Below are positions 1 through 52,383 of a stretch of 64,000 nt of DNA, piece after piece. Source of the stretch: Piromyces finnis finn (Eukaryota > Fungi > Neocallimastigomycota); NCBI GenBank assembly GCA_002104945.1, contig MCFH01000100.1, positions 1-64,000 of the forward strand. Reading direction: 5' to 3'. The position numbers were made by a program, and so were the translations under genes. The notes under the pieces were generated by a model that was given only the letters and a program-made list of their open reading frames with translations, searched no databases and was not told where the DNA came from. Numbering within the stretch: the stretch's first letter is position 1; the number at the start of each line of letters is the position of its first letter.

Positions 1-1284
1 AATAATATTTCAAAATTTTACTTTTATTTTAAAATATGTTATTGAAATAGTAATTAAATTGTTTAATAAAATAAAGATATTTAATATAATTAACCTTGTA
101 ATCTTGTATCCCATCACATTAATTAGGTCGAGAACCAGACTGCCGGTATTAAATAATTAAATTTTGATTATTTTGACATGAAATTTAAATTTTTATATAA
201 TATTAGTTAAATTAAAGCCAATATTTTTTAAAAAAACAAAATCTTTGGTAAAACGTAAAACGATATATCAATATATCTTTTGAAGTTATTTAATTTAGTT
301 TAAAACTTTAATTCTATTTGTTTTATTTAATTTGTTTTTTTTACAGTATATAGTATATAAGAAATAGAACGTATTATTATTAAATTTTTTATATATGATT
401 TTAATATTTTAATTTAATCAAGGTTATGAAATAATCTACTAAATGATTTATTTAATGTATTCGAATTATTAAAATTCATCCATTCGATTAATGTTGTTCA
501 GTTAAATTTCTATATTATTTTTATTGTTAATGAAATTTTATAATAGTTGCTATTTCGCTATTTCTACTACTACTACTACTACTACTAATAATATAATATA
601 TAAATATATATATTACTCAAAATATTATTTATGAATCAAAAAAATATTTTTTTTAAAGAGTAATATTTTATTATTATTATTATTATTATTATTAGTAGTA
701 GTAGTAGTAGTAGTAGAAATAGCGAAATAGCAACTATTATAAAATTTTCATTAACAATAAAAATAATATAGAAATTTAACTGAACAACATTAATCGAATG
801 GATGAATTTTAATAATTCGAATACATTAAATAAATCATTTAGTAGATTATTTCATAACCTTGATTAAATTAAAATATTAAAAATCATATATAAAAAAGTT
901 TAATAATAATACGTTCTATTTCTTATATACTATATACTGTAAAAAAAACAAATTAAATAAAACAAATAGAATTAAAGTTTTAAACTAAATTAAATAACTT
1001 CAAAAGATATATTGATATATCGTTTTACGTTTTACCAAAGATTTTTGTTTTTTTAAAAAATATTGGCTTTAATTTAACTAATATTATATAAAAATTTAAA
1101 TTTCATGTCAAAATAATCAAAATTTAATTATTTAATACCGGCAGTCTGGTTCTCGACCTAATTAATGTGATGGGATACAAGATTACAAGGTTAATTATAT
1201 TTAAATATCTTTATTTTATTAAACAATTTAATTACTATTTCAATAACATATTTTAAAATAAAAGTAAAATTTTGAAATATTATT
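1..1284. repeat. Near-perfect palindrome (arms about 1-592 and 688-1284, spacer about 95 bp); the left arm is cut by the window edge
   Basis: Position 1 pairs with 1284. tcgagaaccagactgccggtatt at 128-150 is the reverse complement of 1134-1156. The (CTA)n/(TAG)n tracts mark the inner ends. The arms differ by a few SNPs/indels. Confidence 0.95.
128..150 (+). promoter_or_regulatory. Conserved GC-rich motif TCGAGAACCAGAC(T/C)GCC(G/A)GTATT of homeodomain-gene upstream regions (copies at 128+, 1134-, 23390+, 32571+, 37101+)
   Basis: The same motif lies about 1.05-1.15 kb upstream of all three homeodomain ATGs and is followed by TTTTGACATGAAATTT. A regulatory role is inferred. Confidence 0.5.
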
Positions 1285-2400
1285 ATAATTTAATAAAATA
1301 TAAATAGGATTATAATAAATTGAATAAAAATTATTTATTATAACTACAACGGAATTTTAATATTTTATTTATGAATTATGGTCATTATAAATTGCGACTG
1401 TATAAAAACAATTATGTATAATTTATTATTTTAATTGTTTTCCAGAGTTTATAGATATATGGCTTTTCAATTTTTTAATTGATATATCAGAATTATTAAT
1501 GAAGTAAATAAACAAAAGAAAAAAATCTATTTAATAAAATAAATAATATATTATAATATTTTTTAATTATTATATTATATCAAATAATGGTAATTCATTA
1601 GCTATATAGAATATATATATAATAGCATTTGTATTTTATTCTATTCTATTTAATATTATTTTATATTATATTATATTATGATATATTAAACAATTACATT
1701 ATAATATTTCTATATTATACACTATATAAAATAATATAAAATGTCTTTTTTCTATTCTATATACATCTTCAAATTATCAAGTAAAATTTTGATATTTGGT
1801 GTAAAATAAAATTAAATCAATAATGGAAGGTACATCTAAGCATCTAGTAATGAAGTATAATCAAATAATATTATTTAAATTCATATGATACATTATAGCC
1901 ATGAAAAATTTTCTTCCTTATATACAATTTGTGGCTTGATTCTAAACTAATAAATATTTAATACAAATACATTAAATTAATACAAATAAGTAAATTGATA
2001 GATATTAAAGTATTTCTATAATATTGCTTTTTTTTTATATATAATTACTCTATAGTAAATCAAACGATATCAAGTGATATTCCATATTAAACATAAATAT
2101 TTCCTTTTTAGCTATTTATTTTATAGCAAAATAAAAAAGACAATGCTTGATATATATTGATTATGTAAAACAAAATAAAAATGACAATATTTAAAGTATT
2201 TACCTATTTACCAAGAGAAGAGGGATTGGTGGGTAATACAAATAATATACAGTATAAAACTAAAAAGGAATATCTATTTACATTATATATTATTATTAAT
2301 AAAAAATAATAATTTTAGTATTAGAAATAAATAATTTATCATATAAAAGACAAAATATAATAATAATAATAATAATAATAATAATAATAATAATAATAAT
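688..2400 (-). repeat. Inverted copy of the HD-C upstream region (about 35770-37567)
   Basis: tacctatttaccaagagaagagggattggtgggtaatac (about 2200-2240) is the reverse complement of about 36020-36060. The match continues through the conserved motif and the (TAA)n tract. Confidence 0.9.
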
Positions 2401-3129
2401 AGAGCACAATAACAAAAATAAAATATAAAATTTTAATTTTTTTTTTGTTAATATTTTTATATAAGCATTATTGTTATTATATGATTTATATGTATAATTT
2501 ATTTAAAAACAATATAATAAAGCAATACTAATAATAAATATAAAGGAAATTCAAATAAGATCGCAAATATAAGAAACTATAATAATTATATATATTAAAG
2601 ATTATATATATATTGTTAAATACTTAATTTGCATTTTAAATAAATAGATATATATTCTGGAATTAGTTTGTGTTAACTAATATAATTCTTTAAAACCAAA
2701 ATAATAATTATAATAAATTACATTAGTTTATTAAAACTATAAAATAAAATAAAAAAATAATAAATATATATTAAAAACACTTTATTAAAAAATATTTTTT
2801 AATTCTGGCATAATTGTAATTTTATGAGTTTTTCCTTTTACCTTTTTTGATTAAGATATTTGTAAATGTATTTTTTTTTTTACTTAAACATAAAAAAACT
2901 AAATATAATAAACTCTTTTCTTTATTATAATTAAATAATAGTAGGTGATTTTTGCCTTTCTAAAACTTAATAATATACTACAATTAATTTATACTACATC
3001 CCTATATCTCTATATGAAATATAGTATATGATTTTAATAATAATTATTTCTACAATGTGAAATAATGAAATGTAAATATTTGACAAATATAAGAATACGT
3101 AATGTAGATGTATAATCCCTAGAGTTCCG

Positions 3130-50340: not shown

Positions 50341-50856
50341 AATTTTATTTTTTATATTTTAAATACTATGTCTCATAATAAGGACTTTAATTATTTGATT
50401 GATTTTTTACTTTAAAACTAAAATTAAATATTGTAAAATTGAAAATAGAAAGGTTTTTAAAATTTAAACTTTAATGCTTTAAAAATGTTAAAATCGACTG
50501 TGTAATATAGTTAAACCGAAATAAAGTTTAATGCTTAAAAACTTTCTATTAATTAATTTTCAAAATAAACTACAATTGATTAATAAAAGTTTAAATAGGT
50601 TAAAAATAGTTTAAAATCTTATTTATTTCGAAATTTGTATACCTTTATTTTTGTATTATTGGACTATTCTAAAAGAAATAGATGACACAAAAAAAAGTTA
50701 AAAATTAAAGTATAAAAATTCGTTTTCTTTTTTTTTTTTGTTTTTTTGTTTTTTGTTTTTCTGTTTTATCTTTACTTTTTTTTAAAAAATAATAAAAGAA
50801 AATAAGTTAACAATTAAATAACAATTTTTTTTACTTTTTTTAATAAATTATTAAAA

Positions 50857-52383
50857 ATGTTTTACGATATTAATAATATTAATAATATTCATTATCAACA
50901 ATTTGATATGTTAAATTCAAAGAATTCTAATAATTCCATTTTAAATCTTCAAAGTGGTAATTTCTCTGATGTGTTAGATCCTACCTTGACGAACTTTACT
51001 CAAAACAATATTAAGAATATTCAGGTTACTTCCCAGCCAAATATTGTCTCTCCTCCTTTTAATACTAACTACCTCTTTGGTAATAATACTATGAAAACAG
51101 CATATAGCAAGAATAATTATCAAAATAATAATAATAATCAAGTGAATTACATTCCAGTTATTGATGCTAATAATATCAATCTTAATAATAATAATAATAA
51201 TAATAATAATAATAATAACAATATTGATTATGAAAATTTAGTCAATAATGAATTTACATTCAAAAATAACAATAATTATAATTATAGTAATTATAATGAT
51301 TATTTAACTATTGTTAATGAGAATAATAATATTAATAACAATCAAATCTATATTAATCAAATTAATAATGGCCAAATCAACAATCTAGTCAATTGCGATC
51401 AATTGAATTATAATCAAATTGTTAATTATCAAGTAATCAATAATAGTTTTATAAATTATGATCAAAATATTAATAATATTATTAATATCAACAATAATAT
51501 CAATAATAATAGCAATAATAATATCAGTATTGATGTTTATAAAAACGCTTTTAATAATAAAATTGATTATTATAATTATTATTATATACCATCTAATGAA
51601 AATGATGACTTTTCAAATGAAGTAAGAAAATTAATTCAACAAGCTTCAAATAGAATTGAAATATTAAGATTAGCAAAAGCAATGGATCAAGAATATCTTT
51701 TGTATTTTATGGAAGAATTGAATGAATTTGATGTTGAATTTTTAATGAAAGATAAAGATATTTTAAAAAAAATATCAACTGTTTACACATCATTTATTTT
51801 CAATAGAAAAAGAAAATACGGTAATAAAATACCTCGTCCATTAAATTGTTTTATGATTTTTAAAAAATACTTGACCTACTATTTTAAACAAAACAATGCA
51901 ATTCATTATAATTATAAAATTTTAAATGGATATTTTGGAGAATTATGGAAATGTCAAAATGATGAGGTAAAGAACGCTTTTATTCACCGTCAGAACATTC
52001 ATAAAATAATTCATCATTATGTGTATGTATATATTTATACAATTATGTATTTATGTATTTTAATATTTTAATATTTAATAATAATATAATTAATTAAATA
52101 TGATTATTAATAAAATTAAAATTATTAAATTAATAATATTTATTCTAATATATTTTTAATGGTATCAAAATAACTCAACAGATATAAAGGTTACAAGTTT
52201 ATTCAAACCAAAGGCAAAAATAAGCATGATTATAAGTTCATCATAAGTAAGGTGAAAAAGATGGTTAAAGAAAATAAAATGAAGAAATGCCTTAAATATT
52301 TAGAAATGATAAAACCTGAAGATAGAATAAAACATCGAGATGAAATTATCGAAATACTTAATTTTTTAAAGAAAAAAATCTAA
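50857..52383 (+). CDS. HMG-box transcription factor copy 3, join(50857..52022,52182..52383), 455 aa
   Basis: Same HMG box, donor GTATGT at 52023, acceptor CAG at 52181, 202-nt exon 2. Confidence 0.9.

Follow-up and report, generated by a model that had tools for sequence, protein, structure and literature searches.

The window, a 64,000-nt stretch spanning positions 1-64000 of scaffold MCFH01000100.1 of Piromyces finnis (GCA_002104945.1; 73,090 nt, repeat-rich), carries three HMG-box genes (HMG-A to HMG-C), three homeobox genes (HD1 to HD3) and four short open reading frames (ORFs) that end in a CaaX motif (CaaX-1 to CaaX-4; Table 1). HMG, homeodomain and CaaX-pheromone genes are the building blocks of fungal mating-type (MAT) loci, and to our knowledge neither a sexual cycle nor a mating locus is known from the anaerobic gut fungi, a phylum regarded as asexual. 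A first-pass annotation of this DNA had placed it in the Neocallimastigomycota and had read the ten genes as a candidate mating-type-like "supercluster." The taxon was guessed correctly (the HMG ORFs match annotated P. finnis proteins, BCR36DRAFT), and all ten genes are present at or near the places given there, with their frames intact. The gene classes also hold: the HMG fold is recovered by a structure model, the homeodomains are TALE-like, and the peptides bear a CaaX motif of the farnesylation type, their C-terminal part being constrained. The supercluster is not a unique locus; it is a duplicated cassette that is present on at least one further scaffold.

Judged from self-comparison of the sequence, the ten genes are not independent and go back to one cassette of ~12 kb (HD> CaaX> <HMG HD>) that was multiplied by nested segmental duplication, inversion, and gene conversion. 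Three blocks recur in self-BLAST: block M (HMG, ~2.3 kb) with 92-95% identity between copies, block P (peptide, ~2.1 kb) with 82-96%, and block H (homeobox, ~3.2 kb) with 82-89%. Only one complete H-P-M-H unit lies in the window, and all others are incomplete or rearranged. An inverted repeat with CaaX-1 and CaaX-2 comes after HMG-A, HD3 is solitary, and an Agd3-like gene lies between CaaX-4 and HMG-C. Since the HMG, CaaX, and HD copies are duplicates, the gene count overstates the evidence, and the linkage of the three classes is essentially one ancestral event.

A second full cassette (HD4, HMG-D, CaaX-5, and HD5) was found on scaffold MCFH01000056.1, with HMG-D being the fourth HMG protein in the database (P0002). 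This block is collinear with the window from position 35728 down to ~18900. On one side its homology ends at window position 35728, exactly where the cassette ends, and gives way to 9 kb of unrelated sequence. A haplotig is thus ruled out for that side, and we regard the block as paralogous. The convergent HMG> <CaaX pair, with a spacing of 0.7-0.85 kb, is kept in three of the four HMG copies.

Each of the three HMG ORFs (4571, plus strand; 29192, minus strand; 50857, plus strand) runs into a stop within a GT-AG intron (159-167 nt) by which the HMG box is interrupted, and splicing yields two-exon genes with products of 455-472 aa. Exon 1 of HMG-A alone scored 18.6 bits against Pfam HMG_box. 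The annotated model of HMG-C (P0001) agrees with ours at the HMG-box splice and has one additional intron that is probably spurious. The homeobox genes have four exons each, the third being a 6-nt micro-exon (GATCAG, ATTCAG, AATCAG, or GATCAT) that is kept in all five of them and encodes the two residues directly before the WF of homeodomain helix 3. These two residues are lost in the annotated models P0003 and P0004, which skip the micro-exon; the 159-aa annotated model of HD5 seems, by its length, to include it. When the whole window was searched for ORFs of 10-120 aa that begin with M and end in C-aliphatic-aliphatic-X, just the four CaaX ORFs and one unrelated 19-aa ORF emerged, so the CaaX ORFs are not products of chance.

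Assembled RNA contigs from four runs of the same organism were placed, at low depth, on window positions 25300-30000; they bear on presence and splicing, not on expression level or strand. The exons of HD1 are covered with 0 mismatches in all four runs. In two of these (X2 and X4) a contig joins 25510 to 25769 with "ATC" between, in agreement with the micro-exon GATCAG. On HMG-B, a 759-nt spliced contig leaves out 162 nt at the intron, shifted by 5 nt relative to the GT-AG model, and its 17 mismatches and 6 gapped positions indicate that it comes from another paralogue. Similarly, the entire CaaX-3 ORF is covered by a 235-nt contig (28020-28254) that derives from a paralogue, given its 7 mismatches. 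As such contigs match none of the five CaaX or four HMG copies, further copies are indicated.

These data bear on whether the copies could be an artefact of assembly, that is, uncollapsed haplotypes or mis-joined long reads and not true paralogues. The scaffold is indeed small (73 kb) and repeat-rich, and a similar block occurs on another scaffold. However, the copies differ by 5-18%, far beyond consensus error, and three HMG copies stand in both orientations on a single scaffold. The RNA contigs are exact on HD1, others fit further, different paralogues, and the MCFH01000056.1 copy has one flank unrelated to the window. We therefore consider an artefact highly improbable.

Table 1. Cassette genes and associated features in the 64,000-nt window (positions in nt of the window unless another locus is named).
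Feature	Position	Strand	Structure and remarks
HMG-A	4571-6156	+	472 aa; exon 1 4571-5787, intron 5788-5954, exon 2 5955-6156; GT-AG intron model
HMG-B	28898-30472	-	470 aa; exon 1 30472-29262, intron 29261-29100, exon 2 29099-28898
HMG-C	50857-52383	+	455 aa; exon 1 50857-52022, intron 52023-52181, exon 2 52182-52383
HD1, TALE-like homeobox	24523-25812	+	299 aa; exons 24523-24753, 24889-25509, 25671-25676, 25771-25812
HD2	33718-34838	+	243 aa; micro-exon 34697-34702; annotated as P0004, 241 aa, without the micro-exon
HD3	38154-39656	+	371 aa; micro-exon 39515-39520; oldest paralogue (dS 0.38-0.47 to the others)
CaaX-1 ORF	7001-7150	-	49 aa; ends CSCVVQ
CaaX-2 ORF	10009-10158	+	49 aa; ends CSCVVQ
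CaaX-3 ORF	28060-28212	+	50 aa; ends CSCVVQ
CaaX-4 ORF	43857-44009	+	50 aa; ends CSCVVQ
Inverted repeat, ~1.5 kb	6630-8104 and 9000-10514		91.5% identity (self-BLAST); holds CaaX-1 and CaaX-2 back to back
Complete cassette, HD1> CaaX-3> <HMG-B HD2>	23319-35728		matches scaffold MCFH01000056.1 collinearly in inverted orientation (82-88% identity)
Conserved non-coding block upstream of CaaX-3	27712-27891	+	90-99% identical among five copies
Micro-exons	25671-25676, 34697-34702, 39515-39520; L001 5267-5272, 14776-14781		6 nt each

All copies examined (five HD, four HMG, and five CaaX) are intact despite 5-40% synonymous divergence. The ratio of nonsynonymous to synonymous divergence (dN/dS) between HMG copies is 0.36-0.44 for the whole gene and 0.19-0.34 for the C-terminal 215 columns, with every indel in frame. 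For the homeodomain it is 0.24-0.76 in nine of the ten pairs and 1.12 for HD4-HD5; in HD4, both the basic N-terminal arm and the PYP motif have substitutions, suggesting that this copy is drifting. Outside the homeodomain the HD proteins give values of 0.90-1.33. To judge from these comparisons and from the peptide alignments below, the DNA-binding domains (HMG and homeodomain) and the C-terminal part of the peptide are under purifying selection. HD1 and HD2 show an additional pattern: their introns 2 and 3 are 97.5-100% identical (25510-25812 vs. 34537-34838), whereas the homeodomain-coding part of exon 2 has a synonymous divergence (dS) of 0.24. A homeobox more diverged than its introns might be taken for positive selection, a reading that we rejected because the homeodomain dN/dS of this pair is 0.45. 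The pattern is thus taken as gene conversion, probably of a short tract that begins at the end of exon 2 and reaches into exon 4.

The five CaaX ORFs (CaaX-1 to CaaX-5), previously unannotated, encode hydrophilic peptides of 49-50 aa without a signal peptide, all ending in CVVQ. They fall into two types that differ at 2 of 63 nt in the C-terminal 21 codons vs. 17 of 81 nt in the aligned N-terminal codons (Fisher p=0.002), and the indels between the types (6 and 3 nt) are in frame. The openness of the ORF (probability of no stop ~0.32, multiplied by ~1/9 for two in-frame indels) is weak evidence alone, so the case for the peptide rests on the conservation pattern. Searches of Pfam and the ESM Atlas with the peptide returned noise only.

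A block of 180 nt located 170-350 nt upstream of the CaaX ORF is 90-99% identical in all five copies, whereas the adjoining DNA is 30-80% identical. With a TATA-like TATAAAAG at 27836 in the CaaX-3 copy, this block is putatively promoter-like. We also noted a perfect palindrome, AACAATTATTGTT, made of two SOX/SRY-type half sites (AACAAT T ATTGTT), at 27754-27766 (CaaX-3) and 43553-43565 (CaaX-4). It matches twice in the window (0.14 expected) and is degenerate upstream of CaaX-1 and CaaX-2. Because the two sites are duplicates of each other, we rejected the palindrome as independent evidence.

The HMG box scored 19-20 bits in Pfam (HMG_box), below the cut-off of 25.4, yet the match spans the full 69-position profile, and a member of the same family (P0006) is above threshold at 32.7 bits. 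The box contains IPRPLNCFMIF (RPxNxF motif), and its best relatives of solved structure, by sequence, are SOX18/2/11 (E 4e-4). An AlphaFold model built on the family alignment (mean predicted local distance difference test score, pLDDT, 81.7) matches SOX/SRY boxes with target-normalised template-modelling (TM) scores of 0.75-0.81 and superposes on Sox2/11/17/18 with a root-mean-square deviation of 2.2-3.5 A over ~75 residues. At the level of the model, the three-helix HMG fold is confirmed; the modelled helical domains that flank the box had no structural match.

An exhaustive HMMER search with the HMG protein gave 53 hits. The nearest relative outside P. finnis is P0005 (54% identity) from gut-type metagenomes, followed by several Pecoramyces ruminantium proteins and unnamed metagenome proteins. 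The relatives from anaerobic fungi have in common a helical "pre-HMG" domain (LLxFLED...EVE...L) and an intron position, and Pecoramyces has at least four clusters of the family. The outer relatives are HMG proteins of a generic kind from Glomeromycota and Mucoromycota (Diversispora, Entrophospora, Jimgerdemannia, and Radiomyces) as well as animal UBF. No named MAT relative is among the best database hits, and a word-based protein search with the C-terminal region recovered P. finnis proteins only. By these sequence relationships, the HMG genes belong, as divergent members, to a multigene family confined to anaerobic fungi. P0005, whose exon-2 architecture and intron position match those of the P. 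finnis HMG genes, was observed on 16 or more contigs of gut-type metagenomes in ENA and JGI (including L005-L012), every one of which ends in one (ATT)n microsatellite ~1 kb downstream; this end was considered as a repeat boundary and rejected in favor of the microsatellite.

The homeodomains scored 24.2-25.4 bits against Pfam Homeobox_KN (cut-off 24). In the alignment to PKNOX1 and MEIS2, the loop joining helices 1 and 2 lacks one residue, so that the loop extension has two residues here and not the three of canonical TALE domains. The best sequence matches among solved structures are PKNOX1, MEIS1/2, and TGIF (E 1e-7 to 3e-5), and MAT alpha2 is not among the matches up to E=1. Of the named Atlas clusters, Tos8p is nearest (0.79 vs. 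0.65 for a basidiomycete Mating_N cluster), both values being leads only. A word-based protein search with the HD exon recovered P. finnis proteins only. The HD genes stand on either side of the CaaX/HMG pair and do not themselves form a pair, and a six-frame scan for the helix-3 motif across the window and the MCFH01000056.1 locus found TALE-like genes only, with no second-class homeodomain partner.

We favor, with slightly less than even confidence, the view that the cassette is a lineage-specific, recently amplified and selected peptide-plus-regulator module for a cell-signalling or cell-identity decision. The HD, HMG, and CaaX genes would act as a single module. The peptide would be farnesylated at the cysteine of CVVQ and then trimmed and methylated, after which it might be exported as a lipopeptide signal by a Ste6-type transporter or stay anchored in the membrane as a micropeptide. 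Both kinds of transcription factor, HMG and homeodomain, would set or read the matching cell state. The decision might concern cryptic mating or switching between zoospore and thallus; in either case, the cassette would not be a single idiomorphic MAT locus of the classical kind.

Several observations weigh against such a module. No relative of the CaaX peptide was found among 5.8 billion proteins in a word-based search, and JGI metagenome contigs gave no confirmed match to either a profile of the five peptides or a degenerate DNA pattern for PYVTCSCVVQ-stop. The polybasic stretch and CSC-CaaX tail, with their two cysteines, resemble the membrane-targeting regions of small GTPases and would suit an intracellular membrane anchor equally well as a pheromone. 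The depth of the RNA data is low, and the contigs over the HMG and CaaX genes derive from paralogues. Retention of linkage needs no selection because the block duplicates as a unit, and a single HMG-HD adjacency is not very improbable in a genome with dozens of such factors. Furthermore, the linkage of the three gene classes, which the first-pass annotation had expected to be checked in relatives, was not found near P0005, P0011, or P0063 within the short flanks available. An 18.5-kb contig with P0005 has no homeobox gene within 10 kb upstream, where two large unrelated genes lie, and the more distant HMG relatives P0011 and P0063 have neither a homeobox gene nor a CaaX ORF within flanks of 1.5-6.5 kb. 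Downstream, the P0005 contig ends in (ATT)n ~680 nt past the stop codon, just short of the expected CaaX position. A 44-aa ORF convergent with P0005 was examined as a CaaX counterpart by position and rejected.

The absence of any functional coupling is a serious possibility, although we rate it as distinctly less than even. Here, ordinary neighbors in a repeat-rich, duplication-prone region would simply have been copied together, the HMG and HD proteins being developmental regulators of expanded, fast-evolving families and the CaaX ORF a young, membrane-anchored intracellular micropeptide or a newborn gene of little function. All copies are traceable to block duplication, fragments of a channel gene were copied together with the cassette, and HMG-A and HMG-C lack the full cassette context. 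In addition, the peptide and the close HMG and HD subfamilies were found in P. finnis only, at the sensitivity reached, and the openness of the ORFs is by itself weakly significant. This alternative is less easily reconciled with a peptide C-terminal part that is far more conserved than the N-terminal part and the flanking DNA, or with the conserved 180-nt block upstream of all five CaaX copies. The convergent HMG/CaaX arrangement kept in three copies and the intact state of every diverged copy also speak for a selected module.

The surroundings of the cassette are mixed. The intronless 851-aa Agd3-like gene at 45671-48226 (minus strand) has all three Agd3 domains (CBM87, deacetylase, and C-terminal; E values as low as 1e-78) and a long tail rich in Thr and Lys. 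This gene is the one exception to a G+C content of ~15% across the whole window, with 34%, and has the look of a polysaccharide deacetylase gained by horizontal transfer. At 14593-18445, both strands carry pieces of a NodB/CE4-type polysaccharide deacetylase together with cysteine-rich modules; TFEDGP is encoded on the minus strand at ~15.8-15.9 kb, whereas the C-terminal end is found at 17.7 kb on the plus strand. These pieces represent either two genes or one broken and rearranged gene. Short Ion_trans fragments occur at 20072-20215, 40804-41325, and 41868-42254, some of them annotated as genes of 173 and 110 aa, and one more lies in the MCFH01000056.1 block. They appear to be pieces of a full four-domain channel gene (1441 aa), which extends from 62282 past the window end, and to have been copied along with the cassette. 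One of these fragments lies in a 1.7-kb segment within 18844-22149, enclosed by an inverted repeat (18844-19691 / 21369-22149, 97.5-98.6% identical). The segment is oriented opposite to the collinear MCFH01000056.1 block, which suggests an inversion mediated by the flanking repeat. Thus, the earlier statement that most neighboring genes are decayed applies to the ion-channel fragments (~20.1, 40.8, and 41.9 kb) and the deacetylase pieces (14.6-18.4 kb) but not to the Agd3-like, TFIIS-like, ankyrin, and large channel genes, which are annotated as whole. Scans against Rfam and for tRNAs returned nothing.

We then weighed the cassette as a true composite mating-type locus, in which alternative HD, HMG, and lipopeptide-pheromone alleles or cassettes would set mating compatibility and the paralogous sub-loci would have parallels in the multi-paralogue A and B loci known from mushrooms or in the pheromone genes present in multiple copies at Cryptococcus MAT. 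All three gene classes are of the MAT kind, and the peptide follows the pattern of a lipopeptide precursor in its size (49-50 aa), its lack of a signal peptide, its CaaX end, and its invariant C-terminal and variable N-terminal parts. A short CaaX-ended, precursor-like ORF without a signal peptide is a feature of pheromone/receptor (P/R) loci, prenylation and secretion being predicted here. The HD dN/dS values near 1 outside the homeodomain are compatible with MAT specificity regions, not specific to them, and come from the assembly of one isolate. No description of a MAT locus in anaerobic gut fungi was found in the literature searched. Homologues of STE6, STE20, GPA1, and DMC1, and hence meiotic and STE genes, have been found in anaerobic fungi, with neither a peptide mating factor nor a complete mating pathway (Wilken et al., 2019; PMC6883316).

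However, more specific expectations of a mating locus fail or weaken. A second homeodomain class is missing from both loci, as described above. Among the annotated neighbors retrieved (23.7-62.4 kb; Pfam only, no topology analysis), there is no receptor-type Pfam hit: these are Ion_trans fragments, Agd3-like, TFIIS-like, and ankyrin genes, and Pfam-less genes (one of 468 aa). Gut-fungal transcriptomes, Piromyces included, list only class C and rhodopsin/cAR G-protein-coupled receptors (GPCRs) and no Ste3-class GPCR (Seppala et al., 2016; PMC5168858). The window's annotated genes and ORF pieces include neither a TPT nor a helicase gene. Within a single assembly the cassette is found at no fewer than two unlinked sites, with the MCFH01000056.1 copy, judged by its unrelated flank on one side, not being a haplotig, and the predicted mature region of the peptide is identical across copies. 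The homeodomain is closer to MEIS, PKNOX, and TGIF (and, as a weak lead only, to Tos8) than to the mating homeodomains with which it could be compared. The HMG gene is one of a multigene family, no named MAT relative is among its best hits, and the genes are transcribed in RNA from ordinary culture. We therefore regard a composite mating-type locus as unlikely.

Of the earlier reading as a mating or cell-identity locus, the combination of classes, the precursor-like peptide, the multi-copy peptide genes in inverted repeats, and the fast-evolving non-homeodomain regions stand; the step from these to a mating or cell-identity locus is conjectural, with the second HD class, a linked receptor-type Pfam hit, TPT/helicase, and uniqueness all wanting. 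A role of the cassette in mating is possible, without support from any specific test made. That it is a working sex or cell-identity determinant of the Neocallimastigomycota, joining HMG, TALE homeodomain, and farnesylated lipopeptide pheromone, is likewise doubtful. If true, it would extend CaaX lipopeptide pheromones and HD/HMG co-determination outside the Dikarya and open a first route to a sexual cycle in this supposedly asexual phylum, where breeding would be valuable for engineering biomass-degrading fungi.

The cassette offers a concrete and testable candidate: an unannotated, selected peptide family with a farnesylation motif and RNA-contig coverage, physically tied to two transcription-factor classes that serve cell identity in other fungi. 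Should the module act in mating or cell-cell signalling, it would bear on the first assembly of fungal MAT loci; should it do neither, it is a clean example of segmental duplication producing an apparent "supercluster." It also exposes gaps in annotation, where micropeptide genes are missed and 6-nt micro-exons skipped.

Among known proteins, the P. finnis homeodomain is best compared with the fungal non-mating TALE factors Tos8/Cup9, as a lead only, and with animal MEIS, PKNOX, and TGIF. In comparison, its loop extension falls one residue short of the canonical TALE length, the protein terminates directly past helix 3, two homeodomain residues are encoded by a micro-exon, and the regions beyond the homeodomain diverge very fast.

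The mucoralean and microsporidian sex locus (SexM/SexP) offers a parallel in that a sequence-specific-type HMG-box gene of an early-diverging fungus is a candidate sex-related marker. However, that locus is flanked by TPT and RNA helicase genes, which were not seen in the P. finnis window, and in Mucorales a single idiomorphic HMG gene stands against at least four near-identical copies in the one genome of P. finnis, where homeobox and CaaX genes are linked to it. Mucorales, moreover, signal by trisporic acid and not by peptides.

Ascomycete MAT loci (with the HMG gene MAT1-2-1 or a2; ancestral yeast and Candida albicans MTL) likewise hold HMG and TALE homeodomain genes at one locus, and a-factor and M-factor resemble the P. 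finnis peptide in precursor size and CaaX ending. In ascomycetes, the pheromone genes lie outside MAT, whereas the P. finnis peptide gene lies inside the cassette. The alpha-box gene and typical-class a1 homeodomain of ascomycete MAT have no counterpart in the cassette, and the P. finnis HMG box has no demonstrated affinity to the MATA clade.

Compared with the mating loci of basidiomycetes (HD, P/R, and the fused MAT of Cryptococcus, in which several pheromone genes are identical), the P. finnis cassette has one unpaired HD class instead of a divergent HD1/HD2 pair and no linked receptor-type Pfam hit in place of the linked STE3 receptor of P/R loci. It also differs in containing an HMG gene, in being located at several unlinked places, and in a peptide without sequence relatives. 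What it shares with these loci is the linkage of TALE-like HD genes to several copies of a CaaX-ended, precursor-like ORF, together with the placement of paralogous copies in inverted repeats and the fast evolution of those HD protein regions that do not bind DNA.

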